Source: Hyalangium minutum
Lineage (GTDB): Bacteria > Myxococcota > Myxococcia > Myxococcales > Myxococcaceae
Assembly (NCBI RefSeq): GCF_000737315.1
Contig: NZ_JMCB01000023.1
Location: forward strand, 124,001 to 188,000
Direction: 5' to 3'
DNA: 64,000 nt
Shown here: one piece after another, positions 21,921 through 35,009 of the stretch
Position numbering within the stretch: position 1 is the first letter of the stretch
How the letters are laid out: each line of letters starts with the position of its first letter
Notes under the pieces: generated by a model
The model's input: only the letters and a program-made list of their open reading frames with translations
What the model was told of the DNA's origin: nothing
The model's database searches: none
Translations under genes and position numbers: made by a program

Positions 21921-23351
21921 CTAGAAACGCTTGGGATCGGGAAACATTTTCTCGGGGTTGAGCAGGCCTGATGGGTCGAAGAAGGCCTTCAAGCGGCGCT
22001 GGAGCGCGAGCACTTCGGGGGGTTGCTCGAGGGCCAAATAGTCCCGCTTGGCGTGTCCTACCCCATGCTCGCCGGTGATCGTGCCACCCATCTGCACCGT
22101 CATTTCGAGCATGCGTCGGATAGCCGTCTCTACGAGTGGGCGCTGGTGAGGCCCTTCGTAGAGGATGTTGGCGTGGAGGTTGCCGTCCCCGGCGTGCCCG
22201 TAGGTGGCCACCATGAGGCCCAGCTCGGTCCCCATGGCCTTGAGCTTCTCGATGATGTCCGGGATACGGGAGCGCGGGACGACGATGTCCTCGGAGATCT
22301 TGTGGGGCTTCAGGGCTCTCAGGGCGGTGGAGACGCCGCGCCGGGCGGCCCAGAGCTTCTCTCGCTGCTCCTCGTTCTGGGCGACGAGCGTCTGAGTGGC
22401 CCCCTGGCGCTCGCAGATCTCTCCCGCTCGGGCCAGTTCGGCGAGCAGGCCCTCCTCCACGCTGCCGTCCACCTCGATGATAACGGCCGAGCCGGACCCG
22501 GGCGGGAAGTGGAAGCCCCGGCCGTCCACGGCCTTCAGCGCCACGTCGTCGATGAGCTCCAGGGTGCGCGGTAGCACGCCCGAGGCGAGCACCGCTGTCA
22601 CCGCGCGCGCCGCCGCGAGCACCGAGTCGAAGATGACCAGCGCCGTCATCACGTGCCGGGGCTTGGGGATGAGCTGGAGGGTGATCTCCGTGGCCACCCC
22701 GAGCGTGCCCTCGGAGCCGACGAAGAGCCCCACGAGATCGTATCCCGCGACGCCTTTGATGGTGCGCCGGCCCACTCGGATGATCTCTCCGCTGGGCAGC
22801 ACCCACTCCAGGCCGATGACATAGTCCTTCGTGACGCCGTACTTGAGCGCCCGGGGACCGCCCGCGTTCTCCGCGATGTTGCCGCCCATCGTGCAGAACT
22901 GCCACGAGTTGGGATCCGGCGGATAGAAGAGGCCCCCCTCCTCCACCGCCTTCATGAGATCGCCGGTGATGACGCCGGGCTCCACCACCGCCGTGAGATC
23001 CTCCACGGAGATGGAGCGGATGCGGTTCATGCGCTCCAGGCTCACCGCCACCCCCCCCATCAACGCCAGCGAGCCACCGCTCTTGCCACTGCGCGCGCCG
23101 CACGGGGTGAACGGCACGCCCAGCGCCTGGCACGTCTTGAAGACGGCGGAGACCTGCTCGGCGCTCTCGGGGAAGACGATGATGTCCGGTGGGTAGATGC
23201 CGCTGTCGGACTCGTCCTTCGAGTACTCCGTCCGGGTGTCCTCGTCGCGGCGGACTTGGCCTGGAGAGAGCACCTCCTGAAGTGCCGTCCACGCGCGCTC
23301 GAGCAGCTCGGGTGCCACGCGCGGGAACGTCTTCTCGAACGGCATCGTCAT
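21921..23351 (-). CDS. FAD-linked oxidase, GlcD / D-2-hydroxyacid dehydrogenase family
   Basis: YPPDPNS..CTMGGNIAENAGG, GSEGTLG, HAGDGNLH, ITGEHGVG, LNPEK. Confidence 0.92.
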   Translation of the reverse strand: MTMPFEKTFPRVAPELLERAWTALQEVLSPGQVRRDEDTRTEYSKDESDSGIYPPDIIVFPESAEQVSAVFKTCQALGVPFTPCGARSGKSGGSLALMGGVAVSLERMNRIRSISVEDLTAVVEPGVITGDLMKAVEEGGLFYPPDPNSWQFCTMGGNIAENAGGPRALKYGVTKDYVIGLEWVLPSGEIIRVGRRTIKGVAGYDLVGLFVGSEGTLGVATEITLQLIPKPRHVMTALVIFDSVLAAARAVTAVLASGVLPRTLELIDDVALKAVDGRGFHFPPGSGSAVIIEVDGSVEEGLLAELARAGEICERQGATQTLVAQNEEQREKLWAARRGVSTALRALKPHKISEDIVVPRSRIPDIIEKLKAMGTELGLMVATYGHAGDGNLHANILYEGPHQRPLVETAIRRMLEMTVQMGGTITGEHGVGHAKRDYLALEQPPEVLALQRRLKAFFDPSGLLNPEKMFPDPKRF

Positions 23352-23974
23352 CTCGGCATCCCCAGCCGGGCCCACAGCTCGCGGCGCAGGGCGCCGTCCT
23401 TGCGCAGGCGGCCCTCGTAGGCCTCCGAGTGCGTGATGGCATCGCGCTGCTGATCCCCCCGGAGGCGCAGGCAGGACTGCTTCGCCTCGATGATGCAAGC
23501 GGTGGCGGGGCTGCCCAGCACCCGGGCCAGTGAGCTGGCCACCTGCCGGGCAAGCTCCTCCTGGAGAATGAGCCGGTGCGCGAAGCAGTCCACCAGCGCC
23601 GCCATCCGCCCGAAGCCCACCACCCGCTTGCCGGGCACGTAGGCCACGTGCGCGCGGCCCTCGAACGGCAGCAGGTGGTGCGGGCACATGGAGTGGAACC
23701 GCAGGTCCGTCACCACCACCAGTTCCCCCGCCGAGTGCGGAGGCGCGGGGTACGTCTTCCCGAGCACCTCCTCGGGGGTGCGCTGGTAGCCGTCGAGGAA
23801 CTCGCTCATCCAGGCCTGCGTCACCCGATCTGGCGTGTTCACCAGGTTCTCATCCGTGAGCGGCAGTCCCGCGGCGCGCAGGAAGTCCCTCACCGCGTTG
23901 GCCATGGCGGCCGCGTCCGGCACAGAGGGCTGGACGTCTCGGGGCGGGCGCTGGGGGGCTCGGCGGTTTCCCAC
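23348..23974 (-). CDS. folE: GTP cyclohydrolase I family protein (divergent active site)
   Basis: TPDRV, SMCPHHLLPF.G.AHVAYVP, LQE, SC..LRG; AAGGAG RBS before GTG. Confidence 0.8.
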   Translation of the reverse strand: MGNRRAPQRPPRDVQPSVPDAAAMANAVRDFLRAAGLPLTDENLVNTPDRVTQAWMSEFLDGYQRTPEEVLGKTYPAPPHSAGELVVVTDLRFHSMCPHHLLPFEGRAHVAYVPGKRVVGFGRMAALVDCFAHRLILQEELARQVASSLARVLGSPATACIIEAKQSCLRLRGDQQRDAITHSEAYEGRLRKDGALRRELWARLGMPR

Positions 23975-23999
23975 GGGCGGTGCTCCTTGCAGTGACAGT

Positions 24000-24344
24000 T
24001 CAGGGGGCCGACACCCTACCCGAGAAAGGGGCGACCTGAATCTCCTCACCTACCACCCGGACAGGATAGGTCCGGATCCGCGCCCCTCGGATGATCGGGC
24101 ACAGGCCCGAGCGCACATCGAACGGCCAGGCGTGCAACGGGCAGTGAAGAACGTAACCCTCCAGGTCGCCCTCCGAGAGCGGCCCTCCACGATGCGGACA
24201 GGTGTCCTGCACCGCGAACACCTCGCCCTCGATGCGCACGAGCGCCACCCGCTCCCCCTCGACGGTGACCACCGCGCGCCCACGCGGATCCAGATCCGAC
24301 AGGCGGGCCACTGGAATGAACTGACTCGGAGGCTGTCTCTCCAT
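24000..24344 (-). CDS. Rieske [2Fe-2S] ferredoxin
   Basis: CPHRGGPL...CPLH. Confidence 0.92.
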   Translation of the reverse strand: MERQPPSQFIPVARLSDLDPRGRAVVTVEGERVALVRIEGEVFAVQDTCPHRGGPLSEGDLEGYVLHCPLHAWPFDVRSGLCPIIRGARIRTYPVRVVGEEIQVAPFSGRVSAP

Positions 24345-24370
24345 ACAATGGACCTCGCCATACGGTCGCC

Positions 24371-24400
24371 TTGACACTTCCAGGCGCCCGCCAGTAGAGC
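24371..24400 (+). promoter_or_regulatory. Putative sigma70 promoter for leader/metal-uptake operon
   Basis: TTGACA (24371) - N18 - TAGAGC (24395), 21 bp before the leader ATG. Confidence 0.5.
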
Positions 24401-24421: not shown

Positions 24422-24844
24422 ATGACCGACCGCCTCTCCACCCTCCAAAGCTACACCACGGCGCTGCTCGTCGCGCTGTGGGCTTTGCACCCGGTGGTCA
24501 CGGTCCTCCACGCCCAAGAGCACGCGCACCGCTACTGCCCGGAGCATCAGACCTTCGAGGAGACAGTGCGCGGCTCGGGACAGTGGCAGTCCCGGCACAC
24601 CCAGAGTGCTCCGGTGCTCACGGCCCTTCGCGGGGACACCGGGCGGGACTCGCTGCGCTCCACCCACGAGGCCTGCCCGCTGCAGACGGCCGGCACCCGG
24701 GGGGAGATGCACGTCGCGGAGATCGTGTGCGAAGTGGCCGAGTGCCTCGGCACGAGCCTGTGCGCCACAGCGCCGCCGGGCTCGCGGTGCTCCGTCCCCA
24801 TCCTCGCCACTGCTCCCAAGTCATCGCCCCCGGCGCGCGCTTAG
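24422..24844 (+). CDS. His/Cys-rich membrane-anchored leader ORF (DUF2946-like architecture) ending APKSSPP
   Basis: N-terminal TM helix, HxxEHxHxxCxEH, HEAC, C-terminal APKSSPP; paralog at 34569-35009. Confidence 0.75.
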   Translation: MTDRLSTLQSYTTALLVALWALHPVVTVLHAQEHAHRYCPEHQTFEETVRGSGQWQSRHTQSAPVLTALRGDTGRDSLRSTHEACPLQTAGTRGEMHVAEIVCEVAECLGTSLCATAPPGSRCSVPILATAPKSSPPARA

Positions 24845-24869
24845 CGTCCCGAAGCGGTAGCTGTGGGTC

Positions 24870-24890
24870 GACGTCCGTCCACCGGACGTC
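24870..24890 (+). promoter_or_regulatory. Hairpin between leader ORF and RBS of OM protein
   Basis: GACGTCCG-TCCAC-CGGACGTC perfect 8-bp stem, 8 nt before GAGGAG. Confidence 0.55.
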
Positions 24891-24912
24891 TGGTTCCTGA
24901 GGAGTTCCAAGC

Positions 24913-26256
<1,344 letters not shown>

Positions 26257-26280
26257 ACCGTTTCCTTGGGAGACCCTCTG

Positions 26281-27198
26281 ATGAACTCCATCCGTCGTCT
26301 GGCGGTCCTCTGCACCGCCCTCTGCAGTCTCTTCGCTCTGCCCGCTCGCGCGGACCTCAATGTCGTCACCACCGTGTCGGATCTGGCCGCCATCTCCAAG
26401 GCCATCGCCGGTGACAAGGGCACGGTCACCGCCCTCTCGCTGCCCTCGCAGGATCCCCACTTCGTCGATGCCAAGCCCAACCTCGCCCTGGCGCTCAACA
26501 AGGCGGATCTGCTCATTGCCATCGGGCTGGATCTCGAGATCGGCTGGCTGCCCACGCTCCAGCTCGGCGCGCGCAACTCCAAGATCCAGACCGGCAATCC
26601 CGGCTACCTGGATGCCTCCCAGTTCGTGAAGGTGCTCGAGGCCCCCGCCGTCAAGGTGGACCGCAGCCAGGGCGATGTGCACCCGGGCGGCAACCCCCAC
26701 TACCTCCATGATCCGCGCATGGCTGTGGCCGTGGCGCGCGGCATCCAGGAGCGCATGGCGCAACTCGATCCGAAGAACGCCGCCACCTACAAGGCGAACA
26801 CGGACAAGTTCGTCGCCGACGTCGAGGCCGCGCGGGCGGGTTGGGAGAAGCGCCTGGCCGCGGCAAAGGGCGTGCCCGTCATCTCGTACCACAAGACGAC
26901 GGCGTACCTGGCCGACTGGCTCGGGTTCCAGACCATCGAATACCTCGAGCCCAAGCCGGGCATCCCGCCCACCCCCTCGCATGTGGCGAAGGTGCTCGGG
27001 CTGGGCCGGCAGCAGAAGGTGAAGCTCGTGGTCCAGGAGGAGTACTACCCGGACTCCACCTCCAAGCTCGTGGCCTCCAAGATCCCCGCCGGGATCGTCA
27101 TCTTCCCCAGCGGCGCGAAGTTCAACGAGGGTGAGACGTACCTGCAGCGCATGGAGCGGCTGACGGAGCGGCTCGAGAAGGGCCTCGGGGCCAAGTGA
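26281..27198 (+). CDS. Zn/Mn ABC transporter substrate-binding protein (cluster A-I)
   Basis: QDPHFV, DVHPGGNPHY, SYHKT, EPKPGIPPTPSH. Confidence 0.92.
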   Translation: MNSIRRLAVLCTALCSLFALPARADLNVVTTVSDLAAISKAIAGDKGTVTALSLPSQDPHFVDAKPNLALALNKADLLIAIGLDLEIGWLPTLQLGARNSKIQTGNPGYLDASQFVKVLEAPAVKVDRSQGDVHPGGNPHYLHDPRMAVAVARGIQERMAQLDPKNAATYKANTDKFVADVEAARAGWEKRLAAAKGVPVISYHKTTAYLADWLGFQTIEYLEPKPGIPPTPSHVAKVLGLGRQQKVKLVVQEEYYPDSTSKLVASKIPAGIVIFPSGAKFNEGETYLQRMERLTERLEKGLGAK

Positions 27199-27200
27199 GG

Positions 27201-28046
27201 ATGAGCATGCGCGTCCGTCTCCTGTTCCCGCTGCTGCTCGCCACGGGCTGCGCCTTCGATGCGGGCGAGGGCTTCGCCGTGCTCGAGCCCACCGTGAGGG
27301 CCGCGTACACCTCCCCTGCCGCCCGCGAGGTGGGGGATGGCTACCAGCGCCTCAGCTCCGACTTCCAGGTGCGGCTGACCACCGCCCGGGTGCGGCTGGA
27401 GAAGATCGACCTGCTCGGCAGCTCGGGCGGAGGCGGCCCCACGGCCTTCGATCCCGCCAACCCGCCCCCGGGCTACAGCATCTGCCACAACGGGCACTGC
27501 GACCGGGACGACGGCGCGCAAGTGTCTTATGAGGACGTCGCCGCCGAGCTGGCCGGTGGAGGCGCCACGGCGACCACGGTTGCCACCCTCCCCGTGGGCG
27601 AGTTGGACCTGCTGGCTCCGGAGACTCGCACGCTGGAGTGCCAGCCCGACTGCGAGCTGCCACAGACGACCGTCTCCAACGCCCGCTGGACGCTGACGTC
27701 CGTGCGGCTCGAGGGCAACGTGCGCGACTCGCGCGCCACGCCCCGGTTCCCCGGTGAGCGCCCCTTCCGGTTCGAACTCACCTCCTCCGGTACCCAGGCC
27801 GAACCGGCCGCGGTCATTACGGGGGCGCTCGATGTGCCCTCGGATCGCGAGCATGCGCCGCGCGTCCGGCTGGACCTGACGCTGGAGCTCACCCCCGTCA
27901 GCTTCGATCCCATCGACTGGGCCGCGGCCGAGCCCGGATTAGACGGGGTCGTGGACCTCAACTCCAACACCACCACCCGAGCCCAGATCCTCAAGACGAT
28001 CTCCGAGCTGGCCCCCAAGGCCGAGGTGCAGCGTGAAGACCGATGA
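27201..28046 (+). CDS. Putative metal-binding lipoprotein
   Basis: Lipobox LATGC; CHNGHC motif; inside the ABC operon. Confidence 0.75.
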   Translation: MSMRVRLLFPLLLATGCAFDAGEGFAVLEPTVRAAYTSPAAREVGDGYQRLSSDFQVRLTTARVRLEKIDLLGSSGGGGPTAFDPANPPPGYSICHNGHCDRDDGAQVSYEDVAAELAGGGATATTVATLPVGELDLLAPETRTLECQPDCELPQTTVSNARWTLTSVRLEGNVRDSRATPRFPGERPFRFELTSSGTQAEPAAVITGALDVPSDREHAPRVRLDLTLELTPVSFDPIDWAAAEPGLDGVVDLNSNTTTRAQILKTISELAPKAEVQREDR

Positions 28047-28863
28047 TCCTCCCAAGCCGGGTGAAGCCCCCCCGGCCGCCGCTCCCGCGCAGAAGGGCGA
28101 TCTGCTCATCTCCTGCGAGGACCTCGCCGTGGGCTACGGCGAGACGCCCATCCTGCCCGCCTTCAACCTGAAGATTCACAAGGGAAGCTTCATCTCCGTC
28201 GTAGGCCGCAACGGCTCGGGCAAGAGCACCTGGTTCAAGACGCTGCTGGGGATGATCCCGCCGGTGTCCGGCCGGGTCATCCGCCACCGCCCGGACCTGA
28301 AGTGGTCCTATGTGCCGCAGACGATCGGCATCGACGCCGTGCTGCCCATGCGCCCCAACGAGATGGTGATCTGGGGACGTCTGCGGGGCTGGAACTTCCT
28401 GCGGCCCTTCTCCACCGGGGAGGAGAGAAAGATCGCCGAGGCGGCCATCGACACGGCGGGCGCGCGCTCCTTCGCCCAGCGCCCCTACCGCGAGCTGTCC
28501 GAGGGCCAGAAGCAGCGCGCCCTGCTGGCGCGGGTCATCGCCAGCGAGGCGGAGTTCGTCCTGCTGGACGAGCCCACCGCCGCCATGGACGCTGTTGCCG
28601 AGCAGCAGACCATGGAGCGGCTCGTGCGGCTGGCGCGCGAGCAGAACATGGCCGTGGTGGTGGTGAGCCACGATCTGAGCCTGGCCGCCAGGCACGCCGA
28701 CGTCATGGTGTTCCTGGACCGCGAGACGCCCTCCATCATCGTGGGAGACAGCCAGACCGTCTTCTGCTCCCCCGCCTTCCGTCACCAATACGGCGACGAG
28801 TACTGCGCTCAAGCCAAGTCAGGAGCCCCCCCTGGATCCCACCATGGACACAGCCATCACTGA
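28033..28863 (+). CDS. Metal ABC transporter ATP-binding protein (ZnuC-like)
   Basis: GRNGSGKS, LSEGQKQR, LLDEP, VSHD; His-rich tail HHGHSHH. Confidence 0.93.
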   Translation: MKTDDPPKPGEAPPAAAPAQKGDLLISCEDLAVGYGETPILPAFNLKIHKGSFISVVGRNGSGKSTWFKTLLGMIPPVSGRVIRHRPDLKWSYVPQTIGIDAVLPMRPNEMVIWGRLRGWNFLRPFSTGEERKIAEAAIDTAGARSFAQRPYRELSEGQKQRALLARVIASEAEFVLLDEPTAAMDAVAEQQTMERLVRLAREQNMAVVVVSHDLSLAARHADVMVFLDRETPSIIVGDSQTVFCSPAFRHQYGDEYCAQAKSGAPPGSHHGHSHH

Positions 28864-29716
28864 GATCTCGAAGTGGCAGCAGTTCCAGGACAGCTGGGAT
28901 CTGTTCCGCGATCCCATCCTCTGCGCCCTGATCGCCGGAGGCGTGCTCGGCTTCCTGAGCGTCTACGTGGTGCTGCGGCGCATGGTGTTCGTCAGCGCCG
29001 CCGTCACCCACGCGGCCGGTCTGGGCGTGGCCCTGGCGTTCTTCGCGCAGATCCACCTGGGCATGCACGTGGACCCCATGGTGGGCGCCACCGCCCTGTC
29101 CGTTCTGGCCACGCTGCTGCTGATGCTGGATCCCGCCCGGCTCAAGCTCACCCGCGAGAGCATGCTCGGCCTGGCCTTCGCGTTCGCCGGAGGCGCGGCC
29201 GTGCTGGTGGGCGACCGCATCGCCCAGGAGGCCCATGACATCCAGGGCATCCTCTTCGGCACCGCGGTGCTCGTGACGCCAGAGAACTTCTACACCGTGG
29301 CGGGCGTGGGCGGCGCCATCCTCGTCCTCCAGTTGTGGTGGTACCGGGGCTTCACCTTCGTCAGCTTCGACCGGGTGGGCGCCACCGTGCAGGGGCTCCC
29401 CGTGCGCATCCTGGACGCGACGTTGATGATGTCCATTGGCGTCATGGTGGGCGTGTCGGCGCGGGCCCTGGGCTCGCTGCCCGTGTTCGCCTTCTCCACC
29501 CTGTCGGCCATCGCCGCGCTGGTGCTGGACTTCCGGCTCCGGTGGACGTTCCTGCTGGCCACCCTCTTCGGGTGCATCTCGGGCTTCGGCGGCTACCTGT
29601 TCGCCTTCTTCTATGACTACCCGGTCGGCGGCTCGCAGACGGTGGCCGCGAGCCTGCTCGTGGCGATCGCCGCGCTCATCCGTGGCTTCTTGGATCTGCT
29701 CGATCCCACACGCTGA
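28844..29716 (+). CDS. Metal ABC transporter permease (ZnuB-like)
   Basis: VVLRRMVFVSAAVTHAA, ILFG, SFD...A..G; multiple TM helices. Confidence 0.92.
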   Translation: MDTAITEISKWQQFQDSWDLFRDPILCALIAGGVLGFLSVYVVLRRMVFVSAAVTHAAGLGVALAFFAQIHLGMHVDPMVGATALSVLATLLLMLDPARLKLTRESMLGLAFAFAGGAAVLVGDRIAQEAHDIQGILFGTAVLVTPENFYTVAGVGGAILVLQLWWYRGFTFVSFDRVGATVQGLPVRILDATLMMSIGVMVGVSARALGSLPVFAFSTLSAIAALVLDFRLRWTFLLATLFGCISGFGGYLFAFFYDYPVGGSQTVAASLLVAIAALIRGFLDLLDPTR

Positions 29717-29817
29717 GTGAGCCCCGGCGTGCTCCGCAGCGGGGCACGCCGGTTCAGCCGATATGAGGGCGCGCGTGGTGCGTTGTGGGAGTGTTGCCCC
29801 ACCGCTCCGGAGCATCC

Positions 29818-31302
29818 ATGGCCTCGCGCGTCCTCCTGTCCTCCTGCCTCGCCGTCTGGGTGGCCGGCTGTGCCTCCCAGAGCCCCCGGCCCACCGTCGC
29901 CGAGCCGTCCACCCCACGCTACGAGCACGTCTACCTGAAGCCGCTCGAGGAGGCCCTGGCGGAGACGCGCAAGCTGCTGGCCGAGAAGGGCTACGGCTTC
30001 GAGCCCACCGAGGACGAGACAGTGCTGCTCACCACCTGGCAGCAGCCGCAGCGTCCAGAAGAGCAGTGGGGCAACCAGAGCCAGTACCGCTACCTGGTGT
30101 CCGGGCTGCGCGTGGGGCCCCGGCAGTCCGTGGTCCGCATCTACCGGATGTGGCGCACGGTGATCAGCAACAACAGCGAGCAGCGGCCCAACCTCTACAA
30201 GTTCATGCAGTACGAGTTCGCCGAGCTCGAGGCGAAGGATCACACCTCGCTCGAGAAGAAGAACCAGGACCGCGAGACGACCACCGGCCTGCGAGACATG
30301 CCGCTGGAGAAGGAGCTCACCACGCGGCTGGAGTCGGGCGCCGGCATCGAGGTGGTGGCCCGCAACGTGACGCCCGAGCCGGACCGTCCCCAGCTGCGCG
30401 AGCCCGAGTTCTACCTGGAGCGCTGGAAGCAGGAGGGCACCGCGCAGCCCCAGGTGGTGCAGCCCTGCCCCCAGGAAGTCCGAGGGCTGACCGCCCTGCT
30501 CAAGCCCGGCCAGGCACTGCTCATCGGCGAGCAGCTCGGCACGCGTGAGGCTCCCGCAGTCGTGGGGGACATGGTGTGCCAGGCCTCGGCGGCGGGGCTC
30601 TCCGTGGTGCTGGGCCTGTCCATCCCCCGCACGGAGCAAGAGCGCCTCAACCGCTACCTGGCCAGCCCGGGTGCGCCCTCGGACCAGGACGAGCTGCTGC
30701 GCGGCCTGTTCTGGCGCCGGCCCTACCAGGATGGCCGCAGCAGCCGCGCCATCATGGATCTGATCGACCGCGTCCGCTCGCTGCGCAACTACGGCCTGTT
30801 CATCACCCTGGTGGCCTATGACACGGAGGAGGCCATCGGAACTCAGCGCGACGCGCTCCTGGCCAAGGTCTGGCAGGATCGCCGCAAGGCCCACCCGGAT
30901 GAGCTCTTCGTCATCCTCGCGGGCAACACACACACACGCACGGTGCAGGGCACGCAGTGGGATCCAGACTTCGTTCCCATGGCGAAGCGGCTGGTGGGCA
31001 CCGATTCCTCGCTGATGGCGCTCGACCTCAGCTACGCCCAGGGCAAGCGCTGGGGGTGTGATCTGAACCGGGATGCGAAGCTGGTGTGCACTGTCGTCGG
31101 CGCCACCCCGAGCGAGCGGGTGGCCGCGGCTCCGGGGCAGACGCCGTACGTCAGGATGTTCAACGAGCGCTCCCTGGAGGGCTACCACGGCCTGCTCTAC
31201 GTAGGCGCCCTGTCGCCCTCACTGCCCGCCACCTCGCTGGAGGGCCATGAGCCGCCGCCCAGCTCGGGAGCCCCAAGGCCCCCGGAGCGCATGAGCCGCT
31301 GA
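29818..31302 (+). CDS. Two-domain lipoprotein with C-terminal ChaN/Tiki/erythromycin-esterase-like domain
   Basis: Lipobox VAGC; LIGEQLGTREAP, DGRSS, LVAYD, LAGNTH. Confidence 0.6.
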   Translation: MASRVLLSSCLAVWVAGCASQSPRPTVAEPSTPRYEHVYLKPLEEALAETRKLLAEKGYGFEPTEDETVLLTTWQQPQRPEEQWGNQSQYRYLVSGLRVGPRQSVVRIYRMWRTVISNNSEQRPNLYKFMQYEFAELEAKDHTSLEKKNQDRETTTGLRDMPLEKELTTRLESGAGIEVVARNVTPEPDRPQLREPEFYLERWKQEGTAQPQVVQPCPQEVRGLTALLKPGQALLIGEQLGTREAPAVVGDMVCQASAAGLSVVLGLSIPRTEQERLNRYLASPGAPSDQDELLRGLFWRRPYQDGRSSRAIMDLIDRVRSLRNYGLFITLVAYDTEEAIGTQRDALLAKVWQDRRKAHPDELFVILAGNTHTRTVQGTQWDPDFVPMAKRLVGTDSSLMALDLSYAQGKRWGCDLNRDAKLVCTVVGATPSERVAAAPGQTPYVRMFNERSLEGYHGLLYVGALSPSLPATSLEGHEPPPSSGAPRPPERMSR

Positions 31303-31955: not shown

Positions 31956-33677
31956 TCACCCCAGAACCTTCGCGCGGGCCCGGACGATCTTGAGCGGCGG
32001 AACCTTCGACGCCTCGCCGCCCACGACGCGCAGGTAGCGCCCACGCCCCGCCATGAACGCCTGGGCACGCTGCAGCTCCGGCAGGTGCGGATCCGCCTGA
32101 CGCCAGCGCTCGAGGAAGGAGGCGAAGTCCAGCACCGCCTCCGGGAAGCTCCCCTGCGCCACCCGGGTCTCCGCGACGAGGAAGCGCGCGTGGCCGCTTC
32201 CCGGCCGCTCCGCCGCGAGCTCTAGCGCCAACTCGAGCGCCTTCTCAACCCTCCCGAAGCGGAGGCGCGCGCGGGCCAGCGACTCTCGCGCGGGCCGGGA
32301 GAACGGAGCGGGCCCCGCAGTGCGCAGGCGGCGCTCCAGTCGGACGGCGCGGATGAAGGTGGCCTCCGCGCGGGCGGCGTCTCCGCGGCGGGCCTCCAGC
32401 GAGCCTCGCAGCTCATCGGCCGCGACCTCCACGACACGGGCCACATCACGCGGGCAGAGGGCCTGTCCCTCGGCGCGGCGCCCCTCGGCCAGCATCTGCT
32501 GCAGGGCTTCGAGCGACGCACACGCCTTTTCCACCTCCCCTATCCTGCCCGCCTCCAGGGCCGCCAGGGCCCGGGTGTAGCAGCGAAGGCCCTCGAGCAA
32601 GCCTCTCTCCGCGGCAGGGGCCTCCGCGTCCAGTTCCACGCGGACATCCGCCGCGGCGCGCCCGAAGCCAAAGCGCAGATGCAGTCCGGCGAGGGCACAC
32701 GCCACGAGCACCACCGCTTGTCCCTGCCCTGCCGCCTCCACATGGGTCCGGAGGCGGCGGGCCCAGGCTTGCCCCTCGGTGTAGCGCCCCGCCTCGGCGC
32801 AGGTGCTGACGAGCAGCCGCATCGCCTCGGCGGCGGCCGGCGCGGCAGTCACGGGCAGCTTCTCCTGGGCCAGCCAGGCCTCATCGGCCTCGATCGCCCC
32901 CTGGAAGGCCTCGCGGGCCTGTTCCGTCAGCCCGATCCGCTGCAGCAGCCGCCCCGCCCCCAGCAGACACGGACTGGCCCTCGCCGCGAGCGACAGCAGC
33001 CAGAGCGCGCTGTCCTTGGCCGCCTCGGGGCGCCCGCTGCCGAGCATCGCCGCCACCCAGGCGAAGTGGACGCCCTCGTGGTGCGGGTGCGTGCGCAGCA
33101 ACTCTCGCAGGAGCGCCTGCGCGTACGGCTGGCCCGAGCCGGGGCGCCCATCAGGCTCGTACCCGTCCATCAGGAAGCCGGCGAGCAGCAGCCGCGCCTC
33201 GGCATCCTCCGGGTGCCGGTCGATGTGGTGCTCCATCTCCCGGATGAACGCCTGCCGCCCATTGGCGGGCCCCTTGTCGGCCAGGAGGCTCGCCGCGACG
33301 ATGTAGCGCTGCTCCCGGTCCGTCACGCCCTCGGCGAGCGCGAGTGCCTTGTGGATGGCCTGGGCGCGATCGGCGGAGAACCGGCCTCCGGCGCCGCGCG
33401 TGAGGGCCAGCCCCCACCACGCCATGGCGAGGGAGGGATCCTGCCGCGCGGCCTCGGCGAAGGCGCGGCGGGCCTCGGGGCCCCACCCCAGGTGCAGCAG
33501 GTTCAGCCCCTGATCAAAGTAGGCCTGCGCGAGCGGCACGTGCGTGCTCACCCGCAGGTGAGCGTGTCCCAGCCCCTCGCGCAGCGGCGGCGTGGGCAGC
33601 TCGGCATCCGGGACGTCATCCCAAGGCCCACGGGTGAAGAGGGAGGGTTCTTCGGCTCGCAGCAGTCGCGCCAGCAT
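31956..33677 (-). CDS. TPR-repeat protein
   Basis: GHAHLRVST..AQAYFDQGL...DPSLAMAWWGLAL; helical repeats throughout. Confidence 0.82.
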   Translation of the reverse strand: MLARLLRAEEPSLFTRGPWDDVPDAELPTPPLREGLGHAHLRVSTHVPLAQAYFDQGLNLLHLGWGPEARRAFAEAARQDPSLAMAWWGLALTRGAGGRFSADRAQAIHKALALAEGVTDREQRYIVAASLLADKGPANGRQAFIREMEHHIDRHPEDAEARLLLAGFLMDGYEPDGRPGSGQPYAQALLRELLRTHPHHEGVHFAWVAAMLGSGRPEAAKDSALWLLSLAARASPCLLGAGRLLQRIGLTEQAREAFQGAIEADEAWLAQEKLPVTAAPAAAEAMRLLVSTCAEAGRYTEGQAWARRLRTHVEAAGQGQAVVLVACALAGLHLRFGFGRAAADVRVELDAEAPAAERGLLEGLRCYTRALAALEAGRIGEVEKACASLEALQQMLAEGRRAEGQALCPRDVARVVEVAADELRGSLEARRGDAARAEATFIRAVRLERRLRTAGPAPFSRPARESLARARLRFGRVEKALELALELAAERPGSGHARFLVAETRVAQGSFPEAVLDFASFLERWRQADPHLPELQRAQAFMAGRGRYLRVVGGEASKVPPLKIVRARAKVLG

Positions 33678-33794
33678 GGGCACCTCACAAGCTCGGGCCC
33701 CAGGGGGCCTCAAATGGTTCACTCCGGTTGCTGCGCGGGCGCGTGCCGTGCTCCCTCACGCGCCCGCTCGTGACTCCGCGGGTGTCGAGCGGGC

Positions 33795-34274
33795 TCAGTG
33801 CTCGTGATCGGTCCCGGACTCCTCGATGACGAGCGAGACGGTCGTCGCCGTGGTGGGACCGAACGTGAGCGTGTACGTGCCCACATTCAGCGGGAACGTG
33901 TGGCGGCCCTTGATCTCCGTGCACTCGGAGGAGCTCTTCACGCTCTCCTCTGCCGCGACGGTCTGGCCGTTTCCGTCCTTCACCGTCACCGGCACGTCCG
34001 CGCTGGTGAAGAGGATGTAGTCGACAGCCTCGGAAGCGGCGAAGGAGACAGAGCCGCCCTTGCCGCCGGTGACGTCGGCCAGGGTGATGTCGTAGCGGCG
34101 GTGATCATTGCTCACGGCGGGCGCGGCCGTGCCGGAAGCGGAGGCGTTGATGGAGGAGGCCGGGCCTGCCTGGAGGTGCTCGCACCCCTCGGTGTCGGCG
34201 GTCTCCTCGTCGCCTCCACACCCGAAGACCAAGGAGGTGGACAGCAGAACAGCGGAAAAGAGCTTCAGCTTCAT
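33795..34274 (-). CDS. Putative metal-binding lipoprotein
   Basis: Lipobox VFGC; GCEHL, HRRYD, CTEIKGRH, terminal DHEH. Confidence 0.8.
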   Translation of the reverse strand: MKLKLFSAVLLSTSLVFGCGGDEETADTEGCEHLQAGPASSINASASGTAAPAVSNDHRRYDITLADVTGGKGGSVSFAASEAVDYILFTSADVPVTVKDGNGQTVAAEESVKSSSECTEIKGRHTFPLNVGTYTLTFGPTTATTVSLVIEESGTDHEH

Positions 34275-34513
34275 GGTTTTGACTCCACAAGGTGGAAAGG
34301 TGGGAACTTCGGTACGGCATCAGCGCGGGCTGTGCACCGGGCTCCCCGCTGGGGGAACACGGCGCACGGCACGCGAAGTTGGGCATAGAGGAGGAATGGG
34401 CCTCTCGCGCGAGGCAACAGCCCACGCGCGCGGGAGCCAGGCGTCAGCCAGGGGTGACACACGGGCCGCGACTCACGGGCACAGGCAGCCAGCGGACGTG
34501 CGCGGGCGTTCAG

Positions 34514-34552
34514 CCGCCATCACCCGCACGGCACACGGGTGCCGTACGGCGG
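34514..34552 (-). promoter_or_regulatory. Hairpin immediately downstream of second leader ORF
   Basis: Minus strand GTACGGCAC-CCGT-GTGCCGTGC 9-bp stem inside outer CCGCC/GGCGG, 16 nt after the stop. Confidence 0.5.
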
Positions 34553-34568
34553 ACGCGCTCCGAGAGAC

Positions 34569-35009
34569 TCAGGACAGTGGAGGAGACGATTTGGGCGCCA
34601 GCCGCAGCCGCGCCACGGGCTCTGGGAGGAGCAGATCCTGCGCGGGCCCCCGGCCGGACTCGGCTTGGAGAGCCAGCGCGGCGAGCCACCACGCCGCGGG
34701 AAGCAGCGACTCACGGCGCAGCGAGGCGTGCGAGCAGTGCGCCTCGGCACCGTGGCCGATCCGGGCTCGCAGACGCGCGCTGGTGATGCGCTCGTCCGTG
34801 AAGGAGGCCTCGGATCGCTGAGACGGCTCGGATCCTCCGTCCTCTTCGAGGTGGAGGATCTCGCCGTGCTCCAGGCAGGTGGAGTGCTGGACGAGGGCGA
34901 AGTGCGCCGCGCTGCCCAGGTAGACCACCGCGCACAGAGCCACGAGCGGCAGCGCCAGGAGGCGCGGCCGGGGGGCACTGCGTTGCGAGCGGTAGGAGGA
35001 GCGGCTCAC
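34569..35009 (-). CDS. Second His/Cys-rich leader ORF ending APKSSPP
   Basis: TM helix, HxxxxxHxxCxEH, HxxEAHC, APKSSPPLS; GTG start. Confidence 0.72.
   Translation of the reverse strand: MSRSSYRSQRSAPRPRLLALPLVALCAVVYLGSAAHFALVQHSTCLEHGEILHLEEDGGSEPSQRSEASFTDERITSARLRARIGHGAEAHCSHASLRRESLLPAAWWLAALALQAESGRGPAQDLLLPEPVARLRLAPKSSPPLS

Follow-up and report, generated by a model that had tools for sequence, protein, structure and literature searches.

The stretch of Hyalangium minutum DNA considered here (64,000 nucleotides, referred to as the window; G+C content 67.5%) contains two short open reading frames (ORFs) that end in the same heptapeptide, APKSSPP. ORF1, for which the nearest loci also come from Hyalangium, heads a conserved operon of the Znu type, which encodes an outer-membrane (OM) protein, ZnuA, a lipoprotein, ZnuC and ZnuB, while ORF2 lies on the other strand, at the head of a second operon (Table 1). 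A preliminary description of this DNA had placed ORF1 ahead of a metal-uptake operon, as the gene order confirms, and had pointed out that the two ORFs share a transmembrane helix, the motif H..H..CxEH, a later H..C, and then exactly 45 residues to the identical APKSSPP. All of these elements are indeed present in both: in ORF1 exactly 45 residues intervene between C85 and A131 of the heptapeptide, and in ORF2 AAHFALVQHSTCLEH is followed by HGAEAHC, 45 residues, APKSSPP, LS and a TGA stop codon.

Table 1. Genes and sequence features of the two loci (positions in the window)
Feature	Position	Strand	Remarks
folE (GTP cyclohydrolase I) and 125-aa Rieske-type protein	23348-24377	-	Divergent from the leader promoter in almost all genomes examined
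Sigma-70-like promoter	24371-24400	+	TTGACA 24371-24376, 18-nt spacer, TAGAGC 24395-24400
ORF1, leader gene, 140 aa	24422-24844	+	Ends APKSSPP-ARA; TAG stop (24842-24844)
Hydrophobic N-terminal helix codons of ORF1, ~residues 11-29	24452-24508	+	Putative N-in/C-out signal anchor
Putative metal site 1 of ORF1, H30-x5-H36-R-Y-C39-P-E41-H42	24509-24547	+	
Putative metal site 2 of ORF1, H82-E-A-C85	24665-24676	+	45 residues ahead of APKSSPP
C-rich, G-poor tract, candidate Rho-loading (rut) region	24752-24842	+	3' end of ORF1
Anti-Shine-Dalgarno stretch in ORF1, TCCTCG..AC(C/T), I-L-A-T codons	24801-24811	+	Complementary to the region of the next gene's ribosome-binding site
APKSSPP codons of ORF1, proposed arrest motif	24812-24832	+	Stall expected at Pro136/Pro137
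Intergenic hairpin H2, 8-bp stem, 5-nt loop	24870-24890	+	Ends 8 nt before the Shine-Dalgarno sequence
Shine-Dalgarno GAGGAG (24899-24904) and GTG start (24913) of first structural gene	24899-24915	+	
Operon putatively controlled by ORF1	24913-29716	+	Order OM protein-ZnuA-lipoprotein-ZnuC-ZnuB
Outer-membrane protein, 447 aa	24913-26256	+	Signal peptide; first structural gene
ZnuA	26266-27198	+	Pfam ZnuA, 6e-48
Predicted lipoprotein, 283 aa	27195-28046	+	Between znuA and znuC
ZnuC	28033-28863	+	Pfam ABC_tran
ZnuB	28844-29716	+	Pfam ABC-3
ORF2, paralogous leader, 146 aa	34569-35009	-	GTG start at 35009; ends APKSSPP-LS, TGA stop
Region downstream of ORF2	31956-34568	-	294-nt intergenic, then operon
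Lipoprotein after ORF2, 159 aa	33795-34274	-	
TPR protein of the ORF2 operon, 588 aa	31956-33722	-	

Both ORFs are genuine conserved coding genes. A six-frame translation of the window yields two occurrences of APK.SPP, against 0.022 expected from composition, and both sit two to three codons ahead of a stop codon. G+C content at third codon positions is 0.887 in ORF1 and 0.85 in ORF2, values usual for the genes of this genome, and there are 92 homologs of ORF1, almost all of them of 140 aa, and 171 of ORF2. A chance or non-coding ORF is ruled out by this excess of the motif, by the gene-like third positions and by the hundreds of homologs. The heptapeptide is encoded by GCT CCC AAG TCA TCG CCC CCG in ORF1 and by GCG CCC AAA TCG TCT CCT CCA (34598-34578, minus strand) in ORF2, so that six of the seven codons differ synonymously, as had been noted; the Ser-Pro-Pro codons of ORF2 in the window (34578-34586, minus strand) are the rare TCT CCT CCA. 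The suggestion that selection acts on the peptide can now be extended well beyond these two genes, since APKxSPP is invariant in 52 genomic loci and in more than 300 family representatives while its codons vary synonymously.

In the alignment of the ORF1 family H30, H36, C39, H42, H82, A117, L128, A131, P132, K133, S135, P136 and P137 are invariant, and C85, invariant in wider family alignments, is kept in at least 90% of the sequences. What does not change in either the ORF1 or the ORF2 family is the set of His/Cys ligands and APKxSPP, the middle of the protein being freely variable. A search of a combined profile of both families against 1.84 billion representatives (clusters at 50% identity) recovered 3139 clusters at E <= 1e-3, of which 634 reached E <= 1e-10. 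The best 150 of the 3139 clusters are almost all 120-160 aa long and were matched nearly end to end. Their sequences have in common the N-terminal helix, then H...H..C.EH, H..C further on, and LAPKxSPP at the end; among 63 diverse members H30, H36, C39, H42, C85, P132, S135, P136 and P137 are invariant, and H82 is found in at least 90%. The pattern [AS]P[KN]xSPP is present in 365 of the 369 proteins that we collected. In 358 of 363 proteins 44-47 residues separate the second Cys from APK (the mode, 45, is seen in 254), and in 343 of these 363 the PP is followed by only one to four residues before the stop; the distance between the first and the second Cys ranges from 31 to 59. The linker between the second Cys and APK is hypervariable in sequence and fixed in length, and such a linker together with an invariant C-terminal Pro motif is the signature reported for the leader peptide CruR (see below).

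The preliminary description had called the two ORFs otherwise dissimilar, a view that has to be given up. When their family profiles were compared by hhalign, after removal of a cross-contaminating row, 128 columns were aligned with a probability of 94.7% and E = 6e-8. Because the profiles align over this length, the comparison indicates that ORF1 and ORF2 are remote paralogs rather than convergent look-alikes.

AlphaFold2, run on ORF1 with a 63-sequence alignment, predicts a helix for residues 2-33 (predicted local distance difference test, pLDDT, of 84-98), a small hairpin for residues 36-47 and coil for residues 48-140 (pLDDT 47-73), with a predicted template modelling score of 0.34. Since the model consists of a helix and a small hairpin with the remainder as coil, the product of ORF1 would be easier to reconcile with a transient peptide that is threaded through the membrane than with a domain that folds. 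The family consensus has Arg residues before the membrane helix and acidic residues after it.

Neither ORF1 nor ORF2 matches DUF2946 (PF11162, the CruR/CutF family) at E <= 0.1. DUF2946 is nonetheless the most recurrent weak Pfam match among 63 distant members (11 of 63, best E = 0.0021), and three of the ten members that were scanned singly reach 11-18 bits against it, below the gathering score of 23.7 bits. These weak alignments are collinear: they begin at the membrane helix and reach the C-terminus, covering the profile from positions 8-13 to 113-117 (of 117), and one homolog of ORF2 bears the UniRef name "DUF2946 domain-containing"; no bona fide DUF2946 protein was among the matches listed in the third homology search, which used the family profile. 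Several traits of the DUF2946 family are found here as well, namely an N-terminal export signal or membrane segment (a predicted helix and hydrophobic stretch), a spacing of ~45 residues between metal motif and putative arrest motif, and a place at the head of an operon for metal homeostasis whose following gene has the same orientation. The C-terminal motif agrees only in part: its PP is no more than 15 residues from the C-terminus, as CutF-like proteins are defined, but RAPP is absent, with APKxSPP instead. The hallmark CXXC (CruR) or CxxxC (CutF) is also absent, with H30, H36, C39, H42 and H82/C85 in place; because these hallmarks are lacking we do not file the family as a DUF2946 member. 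It reads as a divergent sister branch, a remote homolog that the Pfam model misses. Thus, of the proposed analogy with CruR, the fixed spacing, the terminal motif, the position at the operon head and the predicted non-globular protein all stand, but the independence of the two systems does not, since ORF1 and ORF2 would be remote DUF2946 homologs.

The gene order ORF1, 447-aa OM protein, ZnuA, 283-aa lipoprotein, ZnuC, ZnuB is fixed in ~45 genomes, belonging to Hyalangium, Myxococcus, Corallococcus, Pyxidicoccus, Archangium, Vitiosangium and Citreicoccus and including a metagenome-assembled genome of the Haliangiales; Myxococcus xanthus is among the species that have the orthologous locus. The 447-aa protein has no Pfam match above threshold (only a weak one to the beta-barrel porin BBP2) and no relative in the PDB; it is kept in every locus examined and also in one distant locus (L052), and it is probably a channel, so far uncharacterised, by which the metal crosses the outer membrane. 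The 283-aa lipoprotein has no family match, and its position between znuA and znuC is kept in nearly all related loci. ORFs ending in APKxSPP also stand upstream of metal transport genes in other genomes, an arrangement that the preliminary description had proposed to look for. One distant member lies directly upstream of an orthologous outer-membrane protein gene, with ZnuA and ABC-3 genes nearby, another directly upstream of a CobW/COG0523 gene that adjoins a cluster of TonB-dependent receptors, and others directly upstream of TonB-dependent receptors, one further case of this last kind being only probable. Because the genes downstream of ORF1 are Znu-type, zinc rather than copper is probably the relevant metal; the closest solved relatives of the ZnuA in the window are the zinc-binding 2ov1, 1pq4 and YcdH, and from these similarities zinc appears the metal most likely to be sensed.

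Conservation at this locus is not limited to the peptide. A promoter of the form CCTTGACA-N17/18-CAGTAGAGCA is conserved upstream of ORF1 in ~30 aligned genomes from several genera and, because it sits just upstream, ORF1 would head the transcript; no Shine-Dalgarno (SD) sequence precedes the ATG of ORF1. Over the last ~90 nt of the gene (~-60 to +30 relative to the APK codons) C makes up 52-56% and G 19-22% in 50 loci, and the C/G ratio of this tract, 2.4-2.8, is the highest within an 800-nt span. Third codon positions in the tract avoid G. On composition, the tract looks like a Rho-loading site.

Just ahead of APK, the codons for [IV]-L-[AD]-T read (A/G)UC CUC GMC ACC, the complement of CGGUU.CGAGGA around the SD of the next gene. 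Among all 15-nt windows along ORF1 there is a single sharp peak of complementarity (-14.1 kcal/mol, against ~-7 to -11 elsewhere), and minimum-free-energy folds pair this anti-SD stretch with the SD. Codon choice at these positions departs strongly from the background: the Leu codon is CTC in 50 of 52 loci (background 34.5%), Val is encoded by GTC or GTT in 27 loci and by GTG in two (background GTG 69%), and Thr by ACC in 44 and by ACG in one (background about even). Similarly, the first Pro of PP has CCT or CCA, both rare codons, in 41 of the 52 loci, compared with 10.7% in the background.

Hairpins had been reported after both stop codons, the one after ORF1 lying 8 nt before the next ribosome-binding site, and both were found again. 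The hairpin H2 consists of GACGTCCG (24870-24877), the loop TCCAC and CGGACGTC (24883-24890), and a hairpin is likewise present 3' of the ORF2 stop. H2 is kept in 33 aligned loci, with 93.9% of cells paired and four pairs showing compensatory changes, values reached by none of 500 shuffles and well above those of slid controls (<=62%). The intergenic region between ORF1 and the next gene measures 64-105 nt in 45 loci, and no Rfam family or riboswitch was detected in either leader region at E <= 1. Taken as sequence patterns, these features indicate that the RNA around the 3' end of ORF1 is clearly under selection.

We consider it fairly probable, though by no means assured, that ORF1 and ORF2 are cis-acting, metal-released ribosome-arrest leaders of the CruR/CutF kind, and such an interpretation, already offered in the preliminary description, is supported by those available computational tests that could have spoken against it. 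Under this arrest-leader model the nascent peptide would enter the membrane while still being translated, keeping its N-terminus on the cytoplasmic side as the remainder is threaded to the periplasm, and the ribosome would pause at APKxSPP on the two Pro codons. At that point ~45-50 residues would separate the peptidyl-transferase centre from C85. Because this length matches a chain spanning tunnel and translocon, the second His/Cys site would just have emerged from the translocon into the periplasm, beside the first one (H30, H36, C39, H42). In the presence of the metal, most likely Zn(II), the two sites would close on the ion, and the resulting pull or compaction would free the arrest, so that translation would end three codons further on and the operon would stay off. 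Where metal is lacking, the stalled ribosome, plus any queued one, would occupy the C-rich 3' end and the anti-SD stretch, and the operon would be on. By analogy, the logic of CruR, in which a stall without metal means an active operon, fits an uptake operon best. Candidates for the readout are unmasking of the SD (possibly by a queued second ribosome over the anti-SD stretch), blocking of Rho as in CruR, or both.

CruR (Bp2923, DUF2946) of Bordetella pertussis is the leader of the operon of the TonB-dependent transporter bfrG; its CXXC and its RAPP are 45 residues apart (kept within 1-2), RAPP lies three residues before the stop, and a stall without metal keeps the operon on (PMC9426467). ORF1 resembles CruR in its length of ~140 aa, its N-terminal export signal, a Cys motif 45 residues before PP, a PP three residues before the stop, its place as first gene of a metal-uptake operon, and a weak collinear profile similarity. 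It differs in having APKxSPP rather than RAPP, and H-x5-H-x2-C-x-E-H plus H-x2-C rather than CXXC. The RAPP-type core (R-A-P-P, R-G-P-P or R-A-G-P) is absent altogether, in that S-P-P here follows A-P-K-x, with no Arg at the equivalent position. The downstream genes of ORF1 are Znu-type and the metal is probably zinc, whereas that of CruR is copper; the intergenic region is 68 nt long as opposed to 162 nt; the phylum is Myxococcota; ORF1 does not reach the Pfam threshold for DUF2946; and a role for Rho is here a candidate only.

CutF of Rhodobacter capsulatus has CxxxC and PPP, its stall is induced by copper and its target is a detoxifying oxidase (PMC9973294; 10.1101/2025.02.05.636593), and 29 "CutF-like" clusters have been published, some of them His-containing and non-copper (PMC9973294). 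Like CutF, the product of ORF1 is a small, putatively exported protein that carries a Cys/His site and, no more than 15 residues from its end, a PP. No stable CutF protein was detected, and CutF acts only in cis, through structured intergenic RNA that controls the next ribosome-binding site; a structured gap is present here too, although H2 does not itself cover the SD. The survey of CutF-like proteins mentions neither Myxococcota nor zinc nor ZnuA (PMC9973294). In Streptomyces, RAPP/RGPP arrest peptides occur upstream of metal genes (SLIV_16130, SLIV_18480), and their stalling was shown experimentally (PMC12992588). These peptides, as well as ApdA, ApdP and SecM, resemble ours in that a small protein, secreted or membrane-bound, carries a Pro-containing core close to its C-terminus, and the Streptomyces peptides also have conserved Cys/His residues proposed as metal sensors. 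Their core is R-A/G-P-P, whereas APKxSPP has no Arg-Ala/Gly before PP and is known here from sequence alone. TnaC, a cytoplasmic peptide of 24 aa, responds to free tryptophan in the tunnel, the stall occurring at termination; as in the tna leader, a nearby C-rich Rho-loading site may be hidden by a ribosome that has stalled where the leader ORF ends. A trp/his-type attenuator, which couples regulatory codons in a short leader to competing terminator and antiterminator hairpins with a U tract, does not fit an ORF of 140 codons with no U-tract terminator before the next gene.

Several observations weigh against the arrest-leader model or against parts of it. SPP is not known as a strong arrest motif. 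H2 leaves the SD outside its stem, and when a 30-nt footprint over the PP codons is masked the predicted accessibility of the SD moves only from 0.17 to 0.20, so that the SD is not freed; a stalled ribosome that melts a hairpin covering the ribosome-binding site is therefore unsupported as stated. SD accessibility in the natural leaders is 0.171, against 0.215 with dinucleotide-shuffled upstream sequence, and is lower in 32 of 45 loci, a slight effect (Wilcoxon p = 0.004, with loci that are not independent). No U-tract terminator lies between ORF1 and the next gene, the only terminator-like match being upstream of ORF1. As for the metal, the zinc-binding relatives of ZnuA are closely followed in score by others that bind manganese or iron, and the promoter alignment shows no conserved AT-rich palindrome resembling a Zur box. 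Finally, a length of 140 aa with conservation over its full extent would equally suit a functional small membrane protein.

This last point leads to an alternative that we regard as unlikely, though it deserves attention, in which ORF1 encodes a stable small bitopic membrane protein acting in trans, as a periplasmic metal-binding accessory or chaperone or as a signalling partner of the OM protein and the Znu system, with APKxSPP as a C-terminal motif for protein-protein recognition or for processing. One would then readily understand the conservation over all 140 aa, the six invariant His/Cys ligands, the annotation as an ordinary hypothetical protein in many genomes and the constant company of transport proteins in the operon, and the weak thermodynamic support for SD control would be of no concern. 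It is hard to see, however, why such a protein should keep a hypervariable linker at a strict 44-47 aa, which is what one would expect of a ruler for tunnel plus translocon, why its ORF should always be the first in the operon and be followed by a structured gap of 64-105 nt, or why there should be constraints at the nucleotide level around the motif; moreover, no globular fold is predicted, and no known sorting-signal or family model matches. The conserved feature might instead be mainly an RNA element (a Rho-loading site with a structured leader, or a site for a protein or small RNA), the peptide motif being a by-product. The strong synonymous bias, the C-rich, G-poor tract and the covarying hairpin could all be read in this way, yet we find it highly improbable, for the peptide stays constant while its codons change (Ala GCT/GCC/GCG, Pro1 CCT/CCA/CCC/CCG, Pro2 CCC/CCG/CCA), and the motif is kept in paralogs and distant members with wholly different flanking RNA and intergenic regions of 67 to ~400 nt. 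The absence of an Rfam match also argues against it.

A different question is that of polarity. In CutF it is copper that induces stalling and unmasks cutO's ribosome-binding site (10.1101/2025.02.05.636593), and an arrest leader of that opposite kind, in which the metal induces or prolongs the stall and the operon is then on, would mean that the operon serves to handle an abundance of metal or that it answers to some metal besides zinc. Sequence alone does not reveal which way the response runs, and the uncharacterised ORF2 operon adjoins MerC in some genomes. Nevertheless, ZnuABC-type systems, TonB-dependent receptors and COG0523 proteins are importers or serve in starvation, and importers are logically on when metal is scarce, as in the case of CruR/BfrG (PMC9426467), so we think there is only a small chance that the polarity is reversed.

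Going further than the arrest-leader model itself, we suggest, quite tentatively and with rather less confidence, that APKxSPP is a new arrest core distinct from RAPP that defines a family of more than 3000 clusters of force-released co-translational zinc sensors. This family might then be the first case of periplasmic zinc being sensed by a nascent chain, exerting post-transcriptional control over ZnuABC, TonB-dependent receptors and COG0523 genes among the Myxococcota and their relatives. Pfam and NCBIfam, including the modelled myxobacterial C-terminal sorting signals, gave no above-threshold match to the ORFs or the family, and text searches for APKxSPP and for its link to zinc found no prior description. 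APKxSPP is likewise unmentioned in PMC9426467, PMC9973294, 10.1101/2025.02.05.636593 and PMC12992588. The motif class, the ligand set, the link to zinc-type uptake and the size of the family thus appear to be new, while the concept is already known. In the prevailing view, nearly all control of bacterial zinc uptake falls to Zur, which acts on transcription. If the arrest-leader model is correct, a leader that reads periplasmic zinc during its own synthesis would add a post-transcriptional layer to this control, the principle of CruR/CutF would extend from copper to another metal and another phylum, and the arrest-peptide field would gain, for structural study, a motif that is new, highly conserved and equipped with its own 45-residue ruler. 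Once defined, this large and apparently unnamed family would also give thousands of "hypothetical proteins" a better annotation and mark the operons that follow them as regulated by metal.

The gene order around ORF2 recurs in Myxococcus, Corallococcus and Archangium, with intergenic gaps of 290-400 nt. Elsewhere the ORF2 operon comprises the 159-aa lipoprotein, at times two small genes, and a TPR protein of ~580 aa, with MerC in some genomes. The lipoprotein has C-E-H near its N-terminus and DHEH at its end. Because of these residues, and of an operon with small ORFs, a TPR protein and MerC, the sequence suggests a second, uncharacterised metal-related system. In the minimum-free-energy fold of the ORF2 leader, CUCCAC pairs with the SD of the lipoprotein gene, GUGGAG (34283-34288, minus strand), ~290 nt downstream; Myxococcus stipitatus has the wobble-compatible CUCCGC, but neither Corallococcus nor Archangium clearly shows the pairing.

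Some minor observations concern the ORF1 family and its neighbours. The stop codon in 52 orthologs of ORF1 is TAG in 33 cases, TGA in 17 and TAA in two, a share of TAG that seems high for a high-GC genome, background stop usage not having been compared. The gene after znuB (29785-31302, plus strand) encodes a 505-aa protein with a weak ChaN/haem-binding (Tiki superfamily) match and is found in some related loci only. In one distant locus (L053, 6490-6975) a secreted protein of 161 aa, rich in His/Glu/Ala/Lys repeats (HAKLEAEH-like), is encoded immediately upstream of the family member, and its composition makes it a possible periplasmic metal buffer.

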